From: Dimorphilus gyrociliatus | Lineage: Eukaryota > Animalia > Annelida | Assembly: GCA_904063045.1 (NCBI GenBank) | Contig: CAJFCJ010000019.1 | Coordinates: 2,247,700-2,311,699 of the forward strand | Direction of reading: 5' to 3' | DNA length: 64,000 nt | Part shown: one piece after another, positions 7,638 to 20,595 of the stretch | How the letters are laid out: the number at the start of each line of letters is the position of its first letter | Position numbering within the stretch: position 1 is the stretch's first letter | Made by a program: the position numbers and the translations under genes | The notes under the pieces: model-generated | Seen by the model: the letters and a program-made list of their open reading frames with translations, nothing else | What the model was told of the DNA's origin: nothing | Database searches by the model: none

Positions 7638-9600
7638 ATGAATTTGACCACCGCTCTGGAGTCTCTTAACAGCGTAAGTAAAAATTCATCCGTATTAGCA
7701 GTTTTACTTAGCACTCATTATGCAGCAGGACAGGACTATATATGAGGAATTCATATCACAGATTAGTGACCCAGACTTGGAGGTTGGTAGAATATTGATT
7801 AAATATATTAGGTTCACTAAATTTATGTGATATGGTCCTTAGGCAACAAAAGTAGAACAATTACTTCTAGAGGTCTCACAAAATGCTACTAAATTAACTT
7901 CAAGAAATGTAGAGAACTGCAAAGACTTAATCTACAGAATATTACGCCTGAAATGGACAAATCTAGACCAAAATATAGCTAATGCCTACATTCAATTCGC
8001 TAATTTGCTAGCCTCTTCTCATCCAGAATTCGAAACTGATATTATTGAAGCTAATATAAAATCTTTTCTAATCACTGGTATGATATAAAAGAATTTTAAT
8101 TTTATAACAATCAACAATGAATAGAATTATTTCAGGTGCTTCAGAAGAAGTAGCTCAAAATCGAATTCACGATTTATTATTAAATTTATCATCGAAAAAT
8201 GGATTGTCAAAGTTTGTATACAGGCCTTTTTTCTTTTTACGCTCATCGCAAAATTGATTTGCTTTTTAGTACCGAAGAGAAGATCACTCAAGCAATAACC
8301 AGATATTTTCCTCATATGACTAAAAGCGTGGAACAACATGAAAACTTTACTAAGCACGTTTTGAAATGTAGTACGTATTTGGCATCTGTAAGGGAATATT
8401 TATTGGAAGTTATTATTGATAGAATGTTGAAATTAGATGTGAGTTCTCGCAATTTTTATATAAATATTAATGTGACTTGTAATTCTATATCAAAATAAAA
8501 TAGGCTAGAGCCTCTAGAGAAGCCATACTAGAGGCTGAGGAGAATATGGAAGAATCGTGCACGTTTACAATGGAGACTGAAAAGAATGAATTAGCTCATA
8601 AAGAAGGAGCTCGATTAGATTGTATGATGGACATTTTTTTTACTTACCTACATGATATTTGCCATCCTGAAGGCGATCTCGACTTTGCTGTAAGTCTATT
8701 CTAATATGATTAATAAATTATAAATTATTTAATATTATTCTAATCTTACAGGTAGCAAAAGTTATTTATAAGGACCTATTGTTTGTTTTTGATCGACTTA
8801 TTCTAAAAATGTGGAAAATATGTCATGTTCCATTTGTCATATTTTATTTATGTAGTTTTAAGGATTTACTCGCTGAAGATTTTTTGGATTATCTCTGGAA
8901 GAAAGTTTGTTCTCCCCAAATTGAAACTGTGTTCCGTCAGGCATCGGCTTCCTACATTGCTTCATTTCTGGCTCGTGCTAAATACGTTTCAACAAAAACT
9001 TGTTGTAATATGCTCTCGTTGTTGGCTGAATGGTTACATAATTATCAGTTAGAATCAAATGAGCCCGAGTTCGATTTGCACAAACACGCAACATATTATT
9101 CCGTTGCTCAAGCTCTCTTCTACACATTTACATTTCGACATATTGAGCTCTGTAAATCTCCTTCCGCAAGGAGCTGGATTCATTCTTTACGACTTCAAGC
9201 TTTGGTCACATCCAGACTTAATCCTTTGAAAGCTTGTTTGCCAACTGTCGTCAATACTTTTTCGAGCGTTGCTCACCAACAACAAATAGTACTTTGCGAT
9301 TCAATAATAGAGAGAAATGCTCGAAGTAGTTTACCTGTTGTCTCATCGAAATTCAGCGATGGCTGGCTTTTTACAAAGTCAAATCCACTGGACGCTTTCT
9401 TCCCATTTGATCCATACGTATTAAACCGATCAAAACTTAGGATAAATGGTATTTATAGGGAATACGAAGGTCAACCAGTTGTTATTAAGGAAAGAGAATC
9501 CACTGAAGCTATCGAGGAATCTTGGGAAAGCTTTAAGGCTTCATTAAGTCCTATGTACTGCTCAACATCGCCTGGATATTTGAATTCAATAGAAAATTAA
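7638..9600 (+). CDS. RRN3: RNA polymerase I transcription initiation factor RRN3 (TIF-IA)
   Basis: Multi-exon; motifs EVIIDRMLKLDV, RLDCMM, CHVPFVIFYLCSF, RQASASYIASFLARAK, NPLDAFFPFDPYVL match the RRN3 family. Confidence 0.92.
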
Positions 9601-9757: not shown

Positions 9758-11539
9758 ATGTGGCTAAGTAAGCTAGTATTTGTAATTTTAATAATTGGTC
9801 GTTGTTCTTTGGCCGCTGATAAAGAAGATGAGAACGTTTATACTACTACAGATCCTAAAAAACGCGAACCGTCCCCTTGTGAAGGTATATTCAATGAAAG
9901 ATTATACATTAAAGAAATTACCTTTTAGATTGATTTTCTTTCATATTTTGATAAAAATAAGTTTGCAAATATTTTGTAACGGAATTAAAAGAACGTTTGG
10001 ATGAGACTGGAAAGAATCGCGAAAAAATAAGGACCGGTTATGATTTTGATTTAGATTCTAAGAAGGAATTTGATTACAGAACATCGTGCGCTTATTCGTT
10101 ATCAATATTAAATTATTTGTAGCTTGATTTTTGTTTCTTTTTCTTTACATTTGCTTTAGAAAAGATATTTAAAAGTCTCTCTTTTTTTTGATATCTTGCC
10201 ATTGTTATTTATAATTGTTCTCTCTCACTCGAATTCTATTCTAGTCTGTAAAATCTTCGCCCTCGAACTTCAGGACAAACTAGATCAAACAAAACACTCC
10301 AAGCAAGTCTTAGAAACTGGCTACGATATAAATAAAGAAAAAAAAAAGAAACCTTATAAATATTCGTGAGTGTTGTATTCTCTCTCTTCCTCTTATGTCG
10401 ATATTCTATATTCTCATCGAATGTTCTTTACTTTGTAATATATATTCCCTATCTTATTCAGAGATGACCAAAATATTAAAACTTGCTTATTTAATAAACT
10501 ATATTTCCAGAGAAACAAGACTTATAGAAGCGCTAGAAGATCCTCATATATGCGATAAGATTCTTAAGTATAATGTTCATGCTGAGAGAAAAGGAAGCTT
10601 AAGATATGCAAAAGGTCAAAGTGAAACTATGCAAACTCTACATAATCTCGTGTAAGTATCTAAATCATTTTCCCATTAAATGGCAAATAAGGTGTAAACT
10701 GGGAAGAGAGAGAGAGAAACTCTTAACCCTCTTTAAGCCATTCAGACAAAAAGTTAGAAAAACGAATAACATTGTTAAATAGCTATATTTGAAATTAAAC
10801 AGAGAATAGCCAACCGCTTATCTCTTCGATTTCTTTTAATACAGTCATAAAGGTGTTAAAGTAGTTTACGATATACCATACGAATTATGGAATGAAACTT
10901 CGTCCGAAATTGTCAAAATGCATAGAGCAGTAAGTATTTATACAAAATGATTTTTATCAACATGTGTTACTGTTGTTTAGTTTGCTTTTTAAGGAGAATA
11001 TAAAAAGTTACTAAATATAGACTCTTTGTTCGATAAGCAATAAGATATAACTGCAGTTTTTTTCGTTAATATTCGTTGAAGTATTTTTATTTTCTCTATT
11101 TGACTCAGTAAAAATTCCTTTCAGTGTTTTGCACTTGCAAATGATTATGAGGAAGATATTCAGGAATGGTACTATAATCACCAAGACACAGTTAGCTTAA
11201 TGAAGTATGTATGTGCTGATAGATACCTTAAAGGGAAAGACAAAAGTAAGACTGAAAGATAACACACTAATAATTTCTTTTAGCTATATATTTCTTGCTT
11301 TTTAGAATGTTTGGACGAAATATTCTTTTCGAAGGGAGAAAGTGATGACGACGATGATACAGATTCAAAAGCGAAACAGAAGAAATTGAAGCCAAGTACC
11401 ACTTCTATTTTTTCCTTTATTTTTCTAGTAAAACTAATTTCTAATTTCAATTTTAGAAAAATCAAAAACTGATTCGCAATCTGAAAAAAAGAATCCTAAA
11501 TACGCAAAAGGTGATAAAGGTAGAAAGGTTGAGCTATAA
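9758..11539 (+). CDS. CNPY4: Canopy family ER protein (CNPY3/CNPY4-like, saposin-like DUF3456) with duplicated exon 2
   Basis: Exons 9758-9884, [9962-10085 or 10245-10365], 10511-10651, 10845-10929, 11125-11245, 11306-11395, 11457-11539. Signal peptide, [52 protein letters not shown]-terminal KVEL ER-retrieval-like signal. Confidence 0.92.
10705..10717. repeat. Short (GA)n tract in CNPY intron
   Basis: agagagagagaga read directly. Confidence 0.7.
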
Positions 11540-11954
11540 AAAACATTGGCGCTAAATTTTGTCAACATCTAGTCGTTCTCTCTGGAAATATATCCTACAA
11601 AATCCTCAAAGTTATTCTTTCTCTCAATTTGTGGTAATTTTTTATGTTTTGTATTTTATATACAATTTTTACAATTTCAATGAAAAATTATTTCTATAAA
11701 TTTATGTTTTTTCTCGTTTTTGTGAGCTTCGTCAAAACGTTTTAATTAATTCATGCTTTTGTATCTTTCGTCTGTTTTCTTTTTTTTTTTGTCATTTAAC
11801 CTCTTTTGTATCAAATAGAAATAGAAGCTGTCCTTGAAAGAATAAATTCTCTTAAGTGTATATTTAAGGGCAAAGTACAAGAAGTAATAAAATCAGTTGG
11901 TCCATTACAAAATACTTCACTATTTTAAGGCTACAAGCATTTAATTTTTTACAA

Positions 11955-13199
11955 TTAACTGATAGCTTCCTCAAAACCTGTACGACAAGTCATGTTTAAG
12001 TCTTTCTCTTCTACTTGATCTTCAATAACTGGATCGTTTGCCATACTTTCCTTAATCTTTTCAACGCCTCTCATTACTCTTAAAATATTTTTACCAGCCA
12101 ATTTAATAAGGTCTTCATCACTCCAGTTTCGACGAATAAGTTCAGCGAATAATTTAGGATAAGTTGAAACATCTTCCAAACCAATAGGCGTAAGATCAAC
12201 TCCGTCGTAGTCGCCGCCTATTCCAACAGTATCGATTCCAGCCGTCTGTTTAATATGATCTATATGATCGGCTACTTGGGTAAGGTTTGCCTTTGAATTA
12301 CAACTAATAAATCTGTTGTAGAAGTTGACCATAACAACGCCTCCATTATCTTTCACCCTCCTCAGAATATCGTCTGGAACATTTCGAAATGAATCGCACT
12401 TTGCTCTTGCCGATGAATGACTGTACATAACTGGTGCCTTAGTAGTATCAAGAGCATCTTTCATTGTGTTTACAGATACATGACTTAAATCGAGTATCAT
12501 ACCCATTCGATTCATTTCTTTTATTAATCTTTTACCAAAGTCGGTCAAACCAAAAGAGTTTTCATTTCCATTTTCGGTAGCCCAAGGTGTTGCACAGTTG
12601 TGAGTCAAAGTTAAATACCTTACACCTAATTCGTAAAACATTCTCAAAGCTGCCAAGCTACTATCAATCATATGACCACCTTCCATACCAATAAGCGAGG
12701 CAATTTTACCTTTTGTAAAGGCTTCTTCAACTTGATCAGCAGTTGTTGCGTATTCAAATACGTTGGGATACTTGGCGATGAATCTCCGAATAATATCCGC
12801 TTGTTCGAGAGCAGCCCTAACAGCATCACGATATTGCTGCTTGCATCCAACGTATAAGGCCCAAAATTGACCTCCAAGTAAACCTTCTTTCAATCGACTT
12901 ATATCCGTATGAGATATATTTCCCCATACTTTTTTCAAATCATCATTTAGATTTACATTGTTAAGTTTACTTTTAGCTTTAGCAAGAATTCTCCAAGCAA
13001 GATCGTTGTGACCATCGATTAGAATATTATTCTCTAAAATCCACTTTGCTCTTTCAAAAGCGTCGGAGGGACCACTAGATTTCCTTGTTAATCCGACAGA
13101 CAATCCAATTATTATAGCTAAAGCAACGATACCGCCGACAATACCAATAATAATCCATTTTCTCCGATTTTTATTTTCACCTACGAAACTTTCGTGCAT
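11955..13199 (-). CDS. DPEP1: Membrane dipeptidase (peptidase M19, renal dipeptidase family), type II anchored, intronless
   Basis: IDGHND, GGQFW, GMEGGH, TLTHNC, DLSH, SHS, GIGGDYDG motifs; N-terminal TM WIIIGIVGGIVALAIIIGLSVGL. Confidence 0.93.
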   Translation of the reverse strand: MHESFVGENKNRRKWIIIGIVGGIVALAIIIGLSVGLTRKSSGPSDAFERAKWILENNILIDGHNDLAWRILAKAKSKLNNVNLNDDLKKVWGNISHTDISRLKEGLLGGQFWALYVGCKQQYRDAVRAALEQADIIRRFIAKYPNVFEYATTADQVEEAFTKGKIASLIGMEGGHMIDSSLAALRMFYELGVRYLTLTHNCATPWATENGNENSFGLTDFGKRLIKEMNRMGMILDLSHVSVNTMKDALDTTKAPVMYSHSSARAKCDSFRNVPDDILRRVKDNGGVVMVNFYNRFISCNSKANLTQVADHIDHIKQTAGIDTVGIGGDYDGVDLTPIGLEDVSTYPKLFAELIRRNWSDEDLIKLAGKNILRVMRGVEKIKESMANDPVIEDQVEEKDLNMTCRTGFEEAIS

Positions 13200-13821: not shown

Positions 13822-16800
13822 ATGGGTTGTGGAGCATCAAATGGCGCGCAAATTAAATCTTTAGATTCCTTACCCTATACGTTCAGGATAAACACTGCTT
13901 GGGAACAAGCTCAAAAGAGCTGCAAGAAAAATACGAAGAAGAAATTGGTTGTTAACAGGAGTGGATGGAAAACTGTTAGAATCTTTGTGTCATCAACATT
14001 TAGAGATTTTCATGCAGAAAGAGAAATTTTAGTTAAACAAGTCTTTCCTGATTTGAGGACATGGTGTGAAAACAGAACATTACACCTCATAGAATGTGAC
14101 CTAAGGTAAGGATAAGAGTGTCCTCGTCGAAATCCACAGACACAGTACTCATAATATTTGTTACATTAAGTAATCTTTTCTATCATAAATAATCATATCT
14201 AGCGATCTCTTATGCCCTATACACAGCATTTATTATAATATTGTAACTAGGTGGGGAGTTCCAAAGGATTCTACAACGGAGCAAACTCTCAGGATCTGTT
14301 TAGAAGAGATTGACAGGTGTTACCAAGAAAATGTATGGCCTTTTTTCATTAACATGACATCGGAGAGAACTGGTTGGGTACCAGACGAAGACATTATTCC
14401 CGAATATGTGAAAAATCATTACCAATGGATAGATGGATTAAGTGTCACAGAAATGGAGATTATGCATGCGGCTTATCGTATAGATAATCCAAATGGTAGA
14501 TATGCCAATATAATTTAATATCAATATATATCATAAAAACTTAGAGCACAATTTAATAAAATTATACTACTCCTTGTAGCTTTATTTATGTTCCGAGATG
14601 CGAAATTTTTACAACTCCTTCCTAAGGATGTGAAATCTGAATTTACCGAATTAGAAACAGAAGTAGAAAGTCACTATAAACTTAAAGTACTGAAAGACAA
14701 CATAACGAAAAAATTTGTAAGTACACTTTTAACTAAAGAAGGTTCCATATACTAATATATATACAGTATATATATTTAGAACTTTGTCACCTCACAAGCA
14801 GATGGCGCCTCCTAAAAGACAATTTGGTTTAATGCAGTCGTATAAATTGTGTCTGTGTAGTGACAAAAATGTCAATATAGCAGACAACAACTACGTTAAT
14901 GTTATTTTCCCACTTGTTAAGAGATAAAATTTACCTGTAATACGGTAGTTTTTTATTTTAATAGAAATCATTAATTTTCAATATATTTATTAAATCAATA
15001 ATGGAGGAATTAAAAGTAAACACATATAATGTTGCTATAAACATACAAAAAAAAACAAGGAATTAACGACAATAACGAACAAAGGGTACTATTTTGACCC
15101 TATTATATTTCTCAGGGAAGTTTACAAAACTCATATTGTTCAGGATATTTTTATGTCTATATGTATATTCTTTTTAATGAAATGACATATTACAAATTGT
15201 CTTTACGCAATCATAACTAAACATTGCATATCAGATCTTTTCTGTATACGATGTTCGAATTGTAAAATGAATTTCGTATCTATTGATTTCTCCATAGATT
15301 AAAATCGATTTAGAACGTAGTGTATTTAAAGATTACTTTTAATTGATTTTATTGCTTTCTCTAAAATGAATTTAATATTGAAATATCAAAACAGAAGGAC
15401 AGAGTGAAAACGTACCAAGTAGGAGAAGTTACATATGATGAAGAAACTAATCAAGTAGAATTTTCTGGATTGGACGATTTTGCATCAAAAGTATTTAGTT
15501 TCTTTAAAAATAGGATAGAATTTCAATATCCTCTTGAAAAACGAGGCGATATGAATATTTATACAAGGAGAAAAGAACAACACGAATCTTTTATGAAAAG
15601 TAGAAGTGAAGATGTCCTTGGAAGAGATGATATCATAAAAGAAATGGAAGCCTACTTGTACGATTCTTCCGCAAACGTCCCCTATCTTGTTTTGGGTAAT
15701 GCTGGAAGTGGAAAATCATCAATTCTTGCAAAACTTGCACATAATGCATTGGAGAGAATTACTGCAGGTGATATAAAACCATTCAAAAATAGAGAATGGA
15801 GGATGTTTTGCCATTTTGTTGGAGCAGTTCCAGGCTCTACTGCTGTTGACGGTAGAAATAACTAAGATAACAAGTTGCTTTTTTTATAACATTTAATTGT
15901 ATTTTTAGATATGATTCTTCGCCTTTATAAAGAGATAACTGGTAAGGAAATAAAAGAAAATGAACGATCAAACGCAGTTCAAGTTGTATCTTCACTATTG
16001 GCAAATGACAATATTAACCCCACCATCATAATTATTGATGCTTTAAATCAGTTTGATAATGATGATGATGGAGCAAAATACGTTACTTGGTTGCCTAAAA
16101 AACTGTCGTCGGGAATAAGAATTATCCTATCTATGATTAACGGAACGCAGCAAGCAGAAGTTTTAGAGGGGAGAGAACCTAAGCCCAGAACATTAATTGT
16201 TTCAGAGTTAAATAGTGAAACTCGAACAGAAATAGTAACAACACTACTTGGAAAATACAACAAACGTTTGGATGAAGATCAAATGGAAGTACTACTGTCC
16301 AAGAAATCATCCCATAATCCTCTTTGGCTATCCATTGCGTGTGAAGAATTGAGAGTGTTTGGTAAATTTCGGGAAATTTCAAACAAAATTGACATTTTGG
16401 AGGATGGACTATTAGAATTAGAGGTACAAGTTTTAAGTAGGTTCGAAGAGGAAAATGGCGGGAATTTAATGATTGCCACTCTCTGCTTAATTGAAGTTTC
16501 CGGTATGGGACTACTCGAAACTGAATTGCTAACACTTTTAGGTCATGAAGAAATTTTAAATTTATCCAACGAAAAAGAAGAAATGGAATGCAGTGAAAAA
16601 CCAATAAATCATAATAAAAAATTACCTGCCTTTAAATGGGCCGAAGTTTTTAGAGCCTTAAAACCTTTTATTAGACCCTTTGGTGATAGTGGCGAAGGCA
16701 GATTGGATTTTTATCATAGATCTTTCAGTAAAGCAGTAAGAAAAAGATATCTCGAAAAAGCCGATGGTTATTTTATTTTCTAGTTATTATAATAACATTT

Positions 16801-17988: not shown

Positions 17989-18705
17989 AATTCATTTAAG
18001 TAGCCGAAAACACTACTCTTTATAAACTGATTAATAAAAAAACATATTTAAATATATTTTCACTGTTACAGATATATTTATAAAATATTTGAAGGCACTT
18101 TTAATAAATTGAAAATTATATGATTGTATAGTATTTAGCTAAGCTGATCATGATAGATTTGCTTATTCTGCTTATATCATAAATAATTCAATTTGGAAGT
18201 ATAGTATTATGATCAATGACAATATAAAAGGTATGCTATTGAATTCAATACACCTACGTTAGAAGTATGAATACTTTTGAATGCATTTAAAAGCAAAATT
18301 TTTATATATAGAAAGCTAGAAAATAGTGGAGATTATTCTGTTTTGGTATATTTAACTATTTAGCATAATGAATACAAACATTGAGCACGATGTAAATATT
18401 ATTCAACAACAAAGTAGCAATATAGAGTTAGTTTGTTTCCTAGGCAAACTGAAACAAACTAGCAATAATCGAAAAAGATTGAAAAAAATAAGTTTAAAAT
18501 CTGCAATGACTATATATATGAAACTAACAATGTCCACTATTATAATTGATTTGCAATGACATATTGTTTAAATACAATAGGATTAACTCGTAAAGTATGA
18601 TTCAGGTCGAATAACAATTTTATTTTTATTATAAAGTACATGCATTGATTTTGAAAAAATCTCAAAATATTTTTGGTCAACAAAAGTATTAAGTACAAGT
18701 TTGTG

Positions 18706-18722
18706 TATATATATATATATAT
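18706..18722. repeat. (TA)n microsatellite
   Basis: Direct reading. Confidence 0.85.
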
Positions 18723-18900
18723 CTAATATATATAGTAATTAGATAGCAGTAATTTTAACACGTTTGTTTATAAAGATCAAAACAAAACATACTTATATAC
18801 TGTATATCTACCAGTTTTCATGAAGGTGATTGTAAGAAAATGACAAGATTTAAACACAGCAACATTATTGCGTATTCTATATAGTTAAATATTGTCTCAA

Positions 18901-20595
18901 ATGAATTATCTTTTCTTTATATTTTTTCTTCATATTGAGCATTTATTTGCAATTCGCGTTTGTCAGAAAAATGATTTTAAACACCTTTTCAATTTAAATC
19001 TGGATGTTTGTTCCGCAATTCCTTTAATAGAAACATTTTCGAGGTGGAAATTTGATAATAGCCGCCTTAAGGAGCTTCCCTTAGATCCCGAAAAAAGAAA
19101 TTATGTTAGACGTAATGTTCATAATGCAATTTTTTCTCAAGTGCCAGTTACACCAATAAGATCACCAACACTTTTAGCTGTGTCGGATGATGCTTTGAGA
19201 AATGTACTAAATGTTCGTCCAAAAGTTACTCAAGACTCAAATTTTGTTGACTTTATTAACGGAGTCTTCCGTCCAGAGAATTCTCTTACTTATGCACATA
19301 GGTACGGCGGACATCAGTTTGGTTCTTGGGCTGATCAGTTGGGCGATGGTAGGGCAAATCTCCTTGGTGAAAGGATTTCGTTTGACGGTAAAAGATGGGA
19401 ATATCAATTAAAAGGATCTGGTCGGACACCATATTCAAGGGATGGCGATGGCAGAGCAGTTTTGAGATCATCAATTCGTGAATTTCTATGCAGTGAAGCG
19501 ATGCATTACTTGGACGTTCCAACAAGCCGAGCTGCTGCAATTATTGTTAGTGAAGACACTGTAATGAGAGATCAATTTTATGATGGTCATCCTCAACGCG
19601 AGAAAGTCGCTATTGTGTTGCGATTAGCTGAATCTTGGTTTCGAATTGGTTCTTTAGAAATACTGGCGAAAGGAAAGGAAATAGATAACCTTCGACAACT
19701 AATAGATTTCATTATAGAGAACCATTTTAAATCGATTGATCTCAAAGATGAAAACAAATACATTATATTCTTTAATGAAGTTGTTAATAATACAGCCTAT
19801 ACTATAGCAAAGTGGACAAGTATAGGCTTTGCTCATGGTGTATGTAATACTGACAATTTCAGCCTTTTGGGTCTCACAATAGATTACGGGCCTTTCGGAT
19901 TTTTGGATGCCTACAATCCTGGTTGGACACCAAATACATCAGATGATGAATATCGTTATGCTTTTAATAAGCAGGCTTTTGTTGGCTCTTTCAATCTGTT
20001 GAAATTAAGAGAAGCCCTCTTGCCTTTAATTCCTCATGAAAAACTACCCTCAGTTAGAAATATTTTGAATGGTTTTTACCCATTATACACAAGATATTTC
20101 AATAAATTATATTGCCAGAAATTAGCGCTAATTAAATGCGAAAAAGAAGACGAACATATCATAAATCAACTATTGAAAATGATGGAGGGAAAATCAGCTG
20201 ATTTTACAATGACATTTAGACAATTATCAGAGATTCGTCTGAACATTCATGAGCAAATAGATATTCCGAAAACGGCGTGGGCGCTAAAACATCTTTCGAG
20301 TCATAATCAGTTTGATGCCTGGACTAGAAATTGGATGAAAAGATTAGAGGAAAGTGGGCTAAATTTAAACGAGGCTAAACAAATAATGAACAGAGTTAAC
20401 CCCCGTTATATTCTAAGGAATTGGATATCTCAAGAAGCTATTGAGATGGCTGATAGAGGGGATTTTTCAAGAGTGAGGCTAATATTAGATATTTTGAAAA
20501 ATCCGTATAAACTACAAAAACCGGCAGAAGACTTGAAATATGCAAATAGGCCTCCAAAATGGGCTAAAGGCCTTAAAGTCAGCTGCTCATCTTGA
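18901..20595 (+). CDS. SELENOO: Protein adenylyltransferase SelO (Cys-type, ends VSCSS), intronless
   Basis: YGGHQFG..QLGDGRA, QLKGSGRTPYSR.GDGRAVLRSSIRE, HGVCNTDN, IDYGP, NPRYILRN, VSCSS-stop. First ATG 18901. Confidence 0.95.
   Translation: MNYLFFIFFLHIEHLFAIRVCQKNDFKHLFNLNLDVCSAIPLIETFSRWKFDNSRLKELPLDPEKRNYVRRNVHNAIFSQVPVTPIRSPTLLAVSDDALRNVLNVRPKVTQDSNFVDFINGVFRPENSLTYAHRYGGHQFGSWADQLGDGRANLLGERISFDGKRWEYQLKGSGRTPYSRDGDGRAVLRSSIREFLCSEAMHYLDVPTSRAAAIIVSEDTVMRDQFYDGHPQREKVAIVLRLAESWFRIGSLEILAKGKEIDNLRQLIDFIIENHFKSIDLKDENKYIIFFNEVVNNTAYTIAKWTSIGFAHGVCNTDNFSLLGLTIDYGPFGFLDAYNPGWTPNTSDDEYRYAFNKQAFVGSFNLLKLREALLPLIPHEKLPSVRNILNGFYPLYTRYFNKLYCQKLALIKCEKEDEHIINQLLKMMEGKSADFTMTFRQLSEIRLNIHEQIDIPKTAWALKHLSSHNQFDAWTRNWMKRLEESGLNLNEAKQIMNRVNPRYILRNWISQEAIEMADRGDFSRVRLILDILKNPYKLQKPAEDLKYANRPPKWAKGLKVSCSS

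Follow-up and report, generated by a model that had tools for sequence, protein, structure and literature searches.

Does a single gene of the annelid Dimorphilus gyrociliatus deliver two versions of a canopy protein by choosing between two neighbouring copies of one exon? The question is raised by positions 9758 to 11539 of a 64,000-nucleotide (nt) stretch of its genome (assembly GCA_904063045.1, contig CAJFCJ010000019.1, positions 2,247,700 to 2,311,699 of the forward strand), which is called the window here and to which positions refer. This part of the plus strand carries a CNPY3/4-type canopy gene, single in this worm, in which two homologous exons, 2a and 2b, lie in tandem between exon 1 and exon 3. 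CNPY3 (PRAT4A) and CNPY4 (PRAT4B) are saposin-like co-chaperones of gp96/GRP94 in the endoplasmic reticulum. As shown below, the reading frame admits exactly one of the two copies into a productive message, 2b is the copy used in the productive message of the available RNA, and the long preservation of 2a tips the balance slightly towards a working alternative exon.

Two homologous exons occupy position 2 of a canopy gene

Sequence reading and translation gave a coding gene of seven exons on the plus strand, with position 2 filled by either 2a or 2b (Table 1). Homology searches were carried out exon by exon. The Pfam family PF11938 (DUF3456/Canopy) was matched by exons 2a, 2b, 3 and 5 at profile positions 5–46, 5–45, 49–84 and 114–146, with scores of 20.8 bits for 2a and 26.4 bits for 2b, and P0195, a deposited protein consisting of exons 3–7 and discussed further below, is annotated with this family in the database. 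All six conserved cysteines are present. The N-terminal C-E-V-C spans exon 1 and either copy of exon 2, and the distance between the fifth and sixth cysteines, C(X)11C, is the spacing of CNPY3/4 and not C(X)6C; six cysteines, an N-terminal CXXC and a C(X)11C near the C-terminus are hallmarks of CNPY3 and CNPY4 (PMC6566547). A hydrophobic N-terminus and a KVEL end were read by eye, and other annelid relatives likewise end in ..VEL or ..DEL. The C-terminal end of exon 1 was also matched in other annelid loci by tblastn. The proposal of a first-pass annotation, made from the letters alone, that this is a CNPY3/4-type gene with two tandem homologous exons was borne out.

Sequence and translation also confirmed that both copies are free of stop codons, bounded by AG and GT, entered in phase 1 and left in phase 2. 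In BLASTP the two copies share 12 of 29 residues (E 8e-10), and 15 of 39 residues are identical in their alignment. In each, the first two bases finish a Val codon, after which Cys-Lys follows, and the last two begin a Ser codon whose third base comes from exon 3; the residues C, K, E, Y and S, invariant in the family, are kept in both. At the local base composition, 40 stop-free codons arose by chance in 1–5% of trials. With 124 and 121 nt, each copy is one base over a multiple of three, so that a productive mRNA has to hold exactly one of them. Translation agreed with the annotated frame logic: stops follow within a few codons when both copies or neither is included, and a message with 2a spliced to 2b would also stop early.

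Use of the two copies in RNA

Two public runs contain the stretch, one from Dimorphilus gyrociliatus with spliced contigs (X2) and one marine metatranscriptome (X1). Splice joints were read from the contigs of X2 alone, a run of unrecorded library type whose depths are rough and whose contigs drop rare variants. Because these contigs match the window at more than 99% identity and contain none of the introns that follow exon 3, we infer that X2 is RNA. Three splice events were confirmed to the exact base: 9884>9962, which connects exon 1 with 2a (a single contig with a mean word depth of 98), 9884>10245, joining exon 1 to 2b (depth 194), and 10365>10511, joining 2b to exon 3 (depth 282). The four introns downstream of exon 3 were all spliced, with a depth of 391. 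Thus three of the four junctions that had been proposed for checking were seen, while 10085>10511, the joint from 2a to exon 3, was not.

The productive message in X2 is 1-2b-3. In transcripts with 2a the intron behind it is retained, so that they extend into 2b, and translation ends early. They are represented by contig 8 (340 nt), in which 26 nt of exon 1 lead into a continuous stretch from 9959 to 10272 with zero mismatch; read-through from 2a ends at the TAG at 10120–10122 after 12 extra codons. The unspliced intron 9885–9961 reached a depth of only about 4 and the intron between 2b and exon 3 none, so that the 2a contig stems from a processed transcript and not from pre-mRNA or DNA. Since the depths of 98 and 194 add up roughly to the 282 found at the joint of 2b with exon 3, the molecules with 2a seem to continue through 2b into exon 3, as far as these rough depths allow. 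The only form in X2 that holds both copies is this intron-retaining one, stopped at 10120–10122; no productive message with both copies was found there. A form with 2a spliced directly to exon 3, if present in the X2 sample, is probably rare. Of the proposal that 2a and 2b are mutually exclusive, the frame logic and the use of both acceptors in RNA therefore stand, but a 1-2a-3 message was not seen in X2.

In one further X2 contig (depth 51 of about 600), the run of ten A at 10337 in exon 2b is lengthened by one A, which would shift the frame and may reflect slippage during library making or an allele. From X1, a spliced contig is 90–95% identical to exons 3 and 4 (10511–10648 and 10845–10929) and stops short of exon 2; at this level of identity it indicates that a close relative of the worm was present in that metatranscriptome sample.

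Compared with known mutually exclusive exons that are kept apart by frame incompatibility, the worm pair is alike in adjacency, homology, phases, near-equal lengths that are not multiples of three and the use of both acceptors. It differs in that productive use was seen for one copy only and in that the form with both copies retains the intervening intron rather than splicing 2a to 2b. As a mechanism of exclusion, conserved competing RNA pairing found no support: the 23 inverted repeats found are short and AT-rich, as expected in AT-rich DNA, and have no comparative support. The intron at 10086–10244 showed no unusual RNA structure (fold z -0.58). No publication was found that ties duplicated or mutually exclusive exons to canopy genes.

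The duplication is old and restricted to the Dimorphilus lineage among the sampled species

A profile of 2a and 2b was searched against 1.84 billion representative sequences and gave 78 matches, many of them exon-sized open reading frames on genomic contigs. Exon 2 was counted in 14 loci (L002–L015; the short fragment L001 was left out) by tblastn with every exon. The annelid loci were those of Capitella (L005), Lamellibrachia (L006), Paralvinella (L007), Helobdella (L008) and five clitellate-like metagenome contigs (L011–L015), the mollusc-type loci were those of Mytilus (L002), Elysia (L003), a bivalve-like contig (L004) and Mercenaria (L009), and amphioxus was represented by L010. A single exon 2 was found in all 14 loci, nine annelid, four mollusc-type and amphioxus. 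The comparison with other lophotrochozoan canopy loci that the first-pass annotation had suggested thus returned one exon 2 in each, which points to a lineage-specific duplication, seen only in the Dimorphilus lineage among the species compared. A search of metagenomes for closer relatives matched nothing with the 2b reading frame and only ordinary clitellate-like loci with one exon 2 with that of 2a.

The two copies have not changed at the same pace. Exon 2 of four annelid genomes is 52–67% identical to 2a and 36–51% identical to 2b, compared with 56–64% for the constitutive exon 4 and 53–58% for exon 5. In the exon-2 tree, the end branch of 2a (0.44) is ordinary for an isolated lophotrochozoan, and that of 2b (0.76) is among the longest. 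By these measures 2a is the conservative and 2b the divergent copy. Between them, nucleotide identity is 47% (29.5% expected from composition), the same codon is used for 5 of the 15 residues they have in common, and in the flanks nothing but the homologous donors tc|gtg(c/a)g can be aligned. The duplication is old, because synonymous sites are saturated between the copies.

In the Mytilus edulis assembly (L002, 8003–8141) a stop and a change of frame interrupt the match to exon 3, a part that the deposited protein P0001 (198 residues) skips. Either an error of the assembly or damage to this copy accounts for the interruption.

Exons 2a and 2b are probably not relics of the CNPY3/CNPY4 split

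The first-pass annotation had likened 2a to CNPY3 and 2b to CNPY4 and had proposed that one invertebrate gene makes by splicing what vertebrates divided between two paralogs. Vertebrate sequences for comparison were non-human and came from database searches; human and primate CNPY entries among the matches entered a single motif count and nothing else. Mean global scores of 2a were 77 for CNPY3, 64 for CNPY4 and 116 for annelid exon 2; those of 2b were 64 for CNPY3, 86 for CNPY4, 89 for annelid and 95 for mollusc exon 2. The direction of the likeness was therefore as proposed, but its size lies within the spread of species with a single exon 2, for which the CNPY3/CNPY4 scores were 97/87 (Mytilus), 64/78 (Capitella), 65/92 (P0095) and 65/133 (amphioxus). 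Exon 2 of annelids and molluscs is closer to both copies than either vertebrate paralog is. The residues that 2a has in common with CNPY3 are also annelid consensus, and those that 2b has in common with CNPY4 (ELQ, VLE.G) recur in many invertebrates with a single exon.

In a maximum-likelihood tree of exon 2, 2a and 2b fell into an unresolved lophotrochozoan comb outside the clades of CNPY3 (support 100/99) and of CNPY4 with amphioxus (99/96), and neither exon grouped with a vertebrate paralog. Approximately unbiased (AU) tests on 41 columns rejected nothing: the costs were 5.6 log-likelihood (lnL) units for 2a and 2b as sisters (p 0.22), 13.1 for 2a with CNPY3 (p 0.22) and 12.3 for 2b with CNPY4 (p 0.09). 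Together with the single exon 2 elsewhere, the economical reading of the trees is that exon 2 was duplicated within this lineage, that 2b then changed fast, and that the pair is no relic of the CNPY3/CNPY4 split; the idea of a splice switch later divided between the vertebrate paralogs is disfavoured for exon 2. The likeness of the two copies to CNPY3 and CNPY4 is, to judge from scores and trees, weak and not due to shared descent.

In a tree of the remainder of the protein the worm gene stood among lophotrochozoans, and the relation of CNPY3 to CNPY4 was not resolved by it. By its sequence, the gene is a lophotrochozoan member of the CNPY3/4 group and not an ortholog of either paralog. In exon-by-exon likeness it is a mosaic, with exon 3 nearer to CNPY4 (71% versus 56% for CNPY3), exon 4 nearer to CNPY3 (69% versus 49% for CNPY4) and exon 5 also nearer to CNPY3 (43% versus 27%). 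The worm gene is like vertebrate CNPY3 and CNPY4 in the DUF3456 domain, the six cysteines with CXXC, the C(X)11C, the lysine-rich tail and, as read by eye, a KDEL-like end. The vertebrate proteins are two paralogs, whereas the worm has one gene, with a function that is predicted only. Drosophila CNPYb (seele), the single CNPY3-like co-chaperone of gp93 in the fly, is likewise an invertebrate protein of the CNPY3/4 type and acts with the GRP94 homolog on Toll-type receptors (PMC6566547); unlike in the worm gene, no exon-2 alternative is reported for it, though the fly locus itself was not part of the comparison.

Duplicated exon 4 in bivalves

Judged by the sequences compared, the broader proposal of the first-pass annotation, in which splice alternatives of one gene match the CNPY3/CNPY4 pair of vertebrates, suits bivalve exon 4 far better than exon 2 of Dimorphilus. 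In Mercenaria mercenaria, the RefSeq isoforms X1 and X2 (P0105 and P0126) are identical outside the exon-4 segment, and tandem copies of exon 4 were located in this species and in the bivalve-like contig (Table 1). A tree of exon 4 separated two types with 99/98 support, based on 27 columns only and with convergence possible. The type with V.MD..WNETS comprises vertebrate CNPY3 including that of lamprey, Mercenaria copies a and b, copy a of the bivalve-like contig, Dreissena, the transcript P0133 and exon 4 of Dimorphilus. The type with ELG..WD.PS comprises CNPY4, amphioxus, all other annelids, arthropods, Mercenaria copy c and copy b of the bivalve-like contig. This distribution suggests an old pair of alternative exons 4 that vertebrates might have split between paralogs. 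Like the worm gene, the canopy 4-like gene of bivalves has two versions from one gene by tandem exon duplication, but the duplicated exon is exon 4 (81–85 nt) in the bivalves and exon 2 in the worm, and the exon-4 types are shared across phyla while the exon-2 pair was found only in Dimorphilus.

The part of the protein encoded by exon 2

A sequence search of the PDB with 2b gave no match. An AlphaFold model was built of the Lamellibrachia ortholog, whose exon 2 is 68% identical to 2a; the predicted local distance difference test (pLDDT) score exceeded 90 in the core. In this model, exon 2 forms helix 1 (residues 44–63, starting from the CXXC) and a beta-hairpin (68–71 and 79–82) with a lysine-rich turn, and exon 3 starts the next helix. 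Exon 2 thus carries the second cysteine of the CXXC, most of saposin helix 1 and the beta-hairpin that follows. According to the model, exchange of 2a for 2b would change the exposed face of helix 1 and would turn the hairpin tip from acidic in 2a to strongly basic in 2b. That such a swap might alter client or lipid binding is an analogy to what has been proposed for saposin-like proteins (PMC6566547).

Explanations for the two copies

On balance we slightly favour an alternative pair enforced by the reading frame, in which the productive use of 2a is deduced and was not seen in RNA. Exon 2 would have been duplicated in tandem long ago in the Dimorphilus lineage, within a single CNPY3/4-type gene. 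Exon 2b, with its good donor, would serve the bulk message, and 2a would most likely still enter a 1-2a-3 message where its weak donor gtgcgc is used under regulation, in some stage, sex or cell type that is not dominant in X2. The retained-intron form would be a dead-end by-product that arises where the strong 2b donor is quicker to pair with exon 3, and the isoforms would be set apart by the surface of helix 1 and by the charge of the hairpin turn. The main argument is long preservation. Despite saturated synonymous sites, 2a has kept its frame, the invariant residues and a normal rate, which argues that it was translated under purifying selection long after the duplication and that it is, or very recently was, a working exon. 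A weak donor does not disqualify it, because exon 6 is spliced from gtacca in the main X2 contig. Several observations weigh against a productive 2a. No X2 contig joins 10085 to 10511 or to 10245, and the 2a contig contains 2a, the whole 159-nt stretch behind it and the start of 2b. A variant contig of depth 3 at the joint of 2b with exon 3 was retained in X2, so that splicing of 2a to exon 3 above a few reads might have shown. The 2a donor differs from that of 2b at +4 and +6, in both cases away from the consensus. Moreover, the RNA evidence comes from one contig-level run of unrecorded library type that drops rare forms, and selection on 2a is deduced from distant relatives. With no exit from 10085 found, the result comes close to the contrary case named in the first-pass annotation, an unused, dead 2a with weak splice sites, although the acceptor is used and the exon is clearly not long dead.

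The RNA favours a different explanation, which we regard as possible but rather doubtful: 2a could be an ancestral-type exon 2 that recently lost its donor, whose acceptor competes with 2b and whose output is a stopped, intron-retaining transcript, either waste or a brake. The sole 2a contig keeps 10086–10244 with its stop and has no joint from 10085, gtgcgc looks like a degraded version of the homologous 2b donor gtgagt, and the productive message is carried by 2b. Yet the duplication is old, and 2a is intact and as conserved as the constitutive exons, so its death would have to be very recent for an AT-rich exon to lack any stop or frameshift, which chance provides at the 1–5% given above; a purely regulatory decoy would need no conserved peptide. 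A functional short secreted peptide, made from the retained-intron transcript and consisting of signal peptide, CXXC, helix 1, hairpin and 12 intron-coded residues with no KVEL, would explain selection on 2a without use of its donor, and the depth of this transcript is comparable to that of the productive form, with a frame that covers all of 2a. Four of the six fold-defining cysteines (PMC6566547) would be missing from such a product, cysteines would be left unpaired, and the 78 profile matches included no truncated canopy protein apart from the exon-sized reading frames on genomic contigs; we consider this product very improbable. Just as improbable, in our judgement, is an ancestral bilaterian pair of exons 2 later divided between CNPY3 (2a type) and CNPY4 (2b type). 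It agrees with the differential scores (77/64 and 64/86), with the same direction in exon-by-exon identities, with AU tests that reject neither grouping, and with the ancient two-type system that does seem to exist for exon 4. On the other hand, none of the 14 other loci has a second exon 2, both copies resemble exon 2 of annelids and molluscs more than they resemble either paralog, the residues they share with the paralogs are annelid consensus or widespread among single-exon invertebrates, and the free tree keeps both outside the vertebrate clades, with forcing at a cost of 12–13 lnL compared with 5.6 for sisters. An extension of the frame-enforced pair is unlikely, though less so than these last two: both copies would be functional, splicing would toggle helix 1 and the hairpin between a CNPY3-leaning (2a) and a CNPY4-leaning (2b) state, and Dimorphilus, which keeps only the CNPY3-type exon 4, would have rebuilt independently in exon 2 the two-state client switch of bivalve exon 4 and the vertebrate paralogs.

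Gene structure, public gene model and neighbouring genes

The features of the gene and the bivalve copies of exon 4 are given in Table 1. The public model DgyrCDS11843 (P0195, 211 residues, Dimorphilus gyrociliatus) is identical to exons 3–7, but its start is an ATG at 10395 within the 2b–3 intron, from which its frame continues into exon 3. Intron sequence supplies its first 39 residues, and 10395–10649 translates exactly to the N-terminus of P0195. The public model is wrong at its 5′ end, as it is without exons 1, 2a and 2b and hence without the putative signal peptide, the CXXC and helix 1. No full-length, transcript-derived canopy protein of Dimorphilus was found in the protein database.

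Table 1. Exons and introns of the Dimorphilus canopy gene (window positions) and tandem copies of exon 4 in two bivalve-type loci (positions in the respective locus)
Feature	Positions	Strand	Remarks
Exon 1	9758–9884	+	ATG, hydrophobic signal-peptide-like start, first Cys of CXXC; ends ..PSPCE plus one base, phase 1
Intron 1>2a	9885–9961	+	77 nt, GT..AG; joint 9884>9962 in one RNA contig
Exon 2a	9962–10085	+	124 nt; acceptor ..aaaataag, weak donor gtgcgc at 10086; no joint from 10085 in RNA contigs
Stretch between 2a and 2b	10086–10244	+	159 nt; retained in 2a contig; in-frame TAG 10120–10122
Exon 2b	10245–10365	+	121 nt; acceptor ..ttctag, donor gtgagt; in productive message
Intron 2b>3	10366–10510	+	Joint 10365>10511; contains ATG 10395 used by public model
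Exon 3	10511–10651	+	Third conserved Cys, helices after hairpin; Pfam 26.5 bits; joint 10651>10845
Exon 4	10845–10929	+	VV.D..WNETS type, as in vertebrate CNPY3; RNA joints
Exon 5	11125–11245	+	Fourth and fifth Cys; Pfam 26.6 bits; RNA joints
Exon 6	11306–11395	+	Sixth Cys, acidic stretch; joints 11245>11306 and 11395>11457; identical to P0195
Last exon, coding part	11457–11539	+	Lysine-rich tail, KVEL end, TAA 11537–11539; identical to P0195 C-terminus
Mercenaria (L009) exon-4 copies	16299–16379, 18695–18775, 20493–20573		Three in tandem
Bivalve-like contig (L004) exon-4 copies	11213–11293, 11594–11674		Two in tandem

The gene lies close to its neighbours. One X2 contig of 1987 nt leads from the 3′ end of the upstream gene (stop near 9598) directly into canopy exon 1, with only about 158 nt separating one coding region from the other; this may reflect overlapping untranslated ends or read-through. 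On the minus strand, a long open stretch at 11940–12500, by eye of the membrane dipeptidase type, converges on the 3′ end of the canopy gene, and the X2 contig over canopy exons 3–7 extends about 1.3 kb past 11800 into it.

Implications for the canopy family

The finding corrects a public gene model that misses the putative signal peptide and the first helix. Canopy proteins set the client choice of GRP94/gp96, Toll-like receptors included (PMC6566547). If the favoured reading is true, a worm that swaps helix 1 and the hairpin within one gene would offer a natural variant pair for asking which surface sets client choice. More widely, the canopy family appears to make two versions repeatedly, by duplication of exon 2 in Dimorphilus and of exon 4 in bivalves, and the alignment of the exon-4 types with CNPY3 versus CNPY4 makes the model of an alternative exon turned into paralogs testable in this family.

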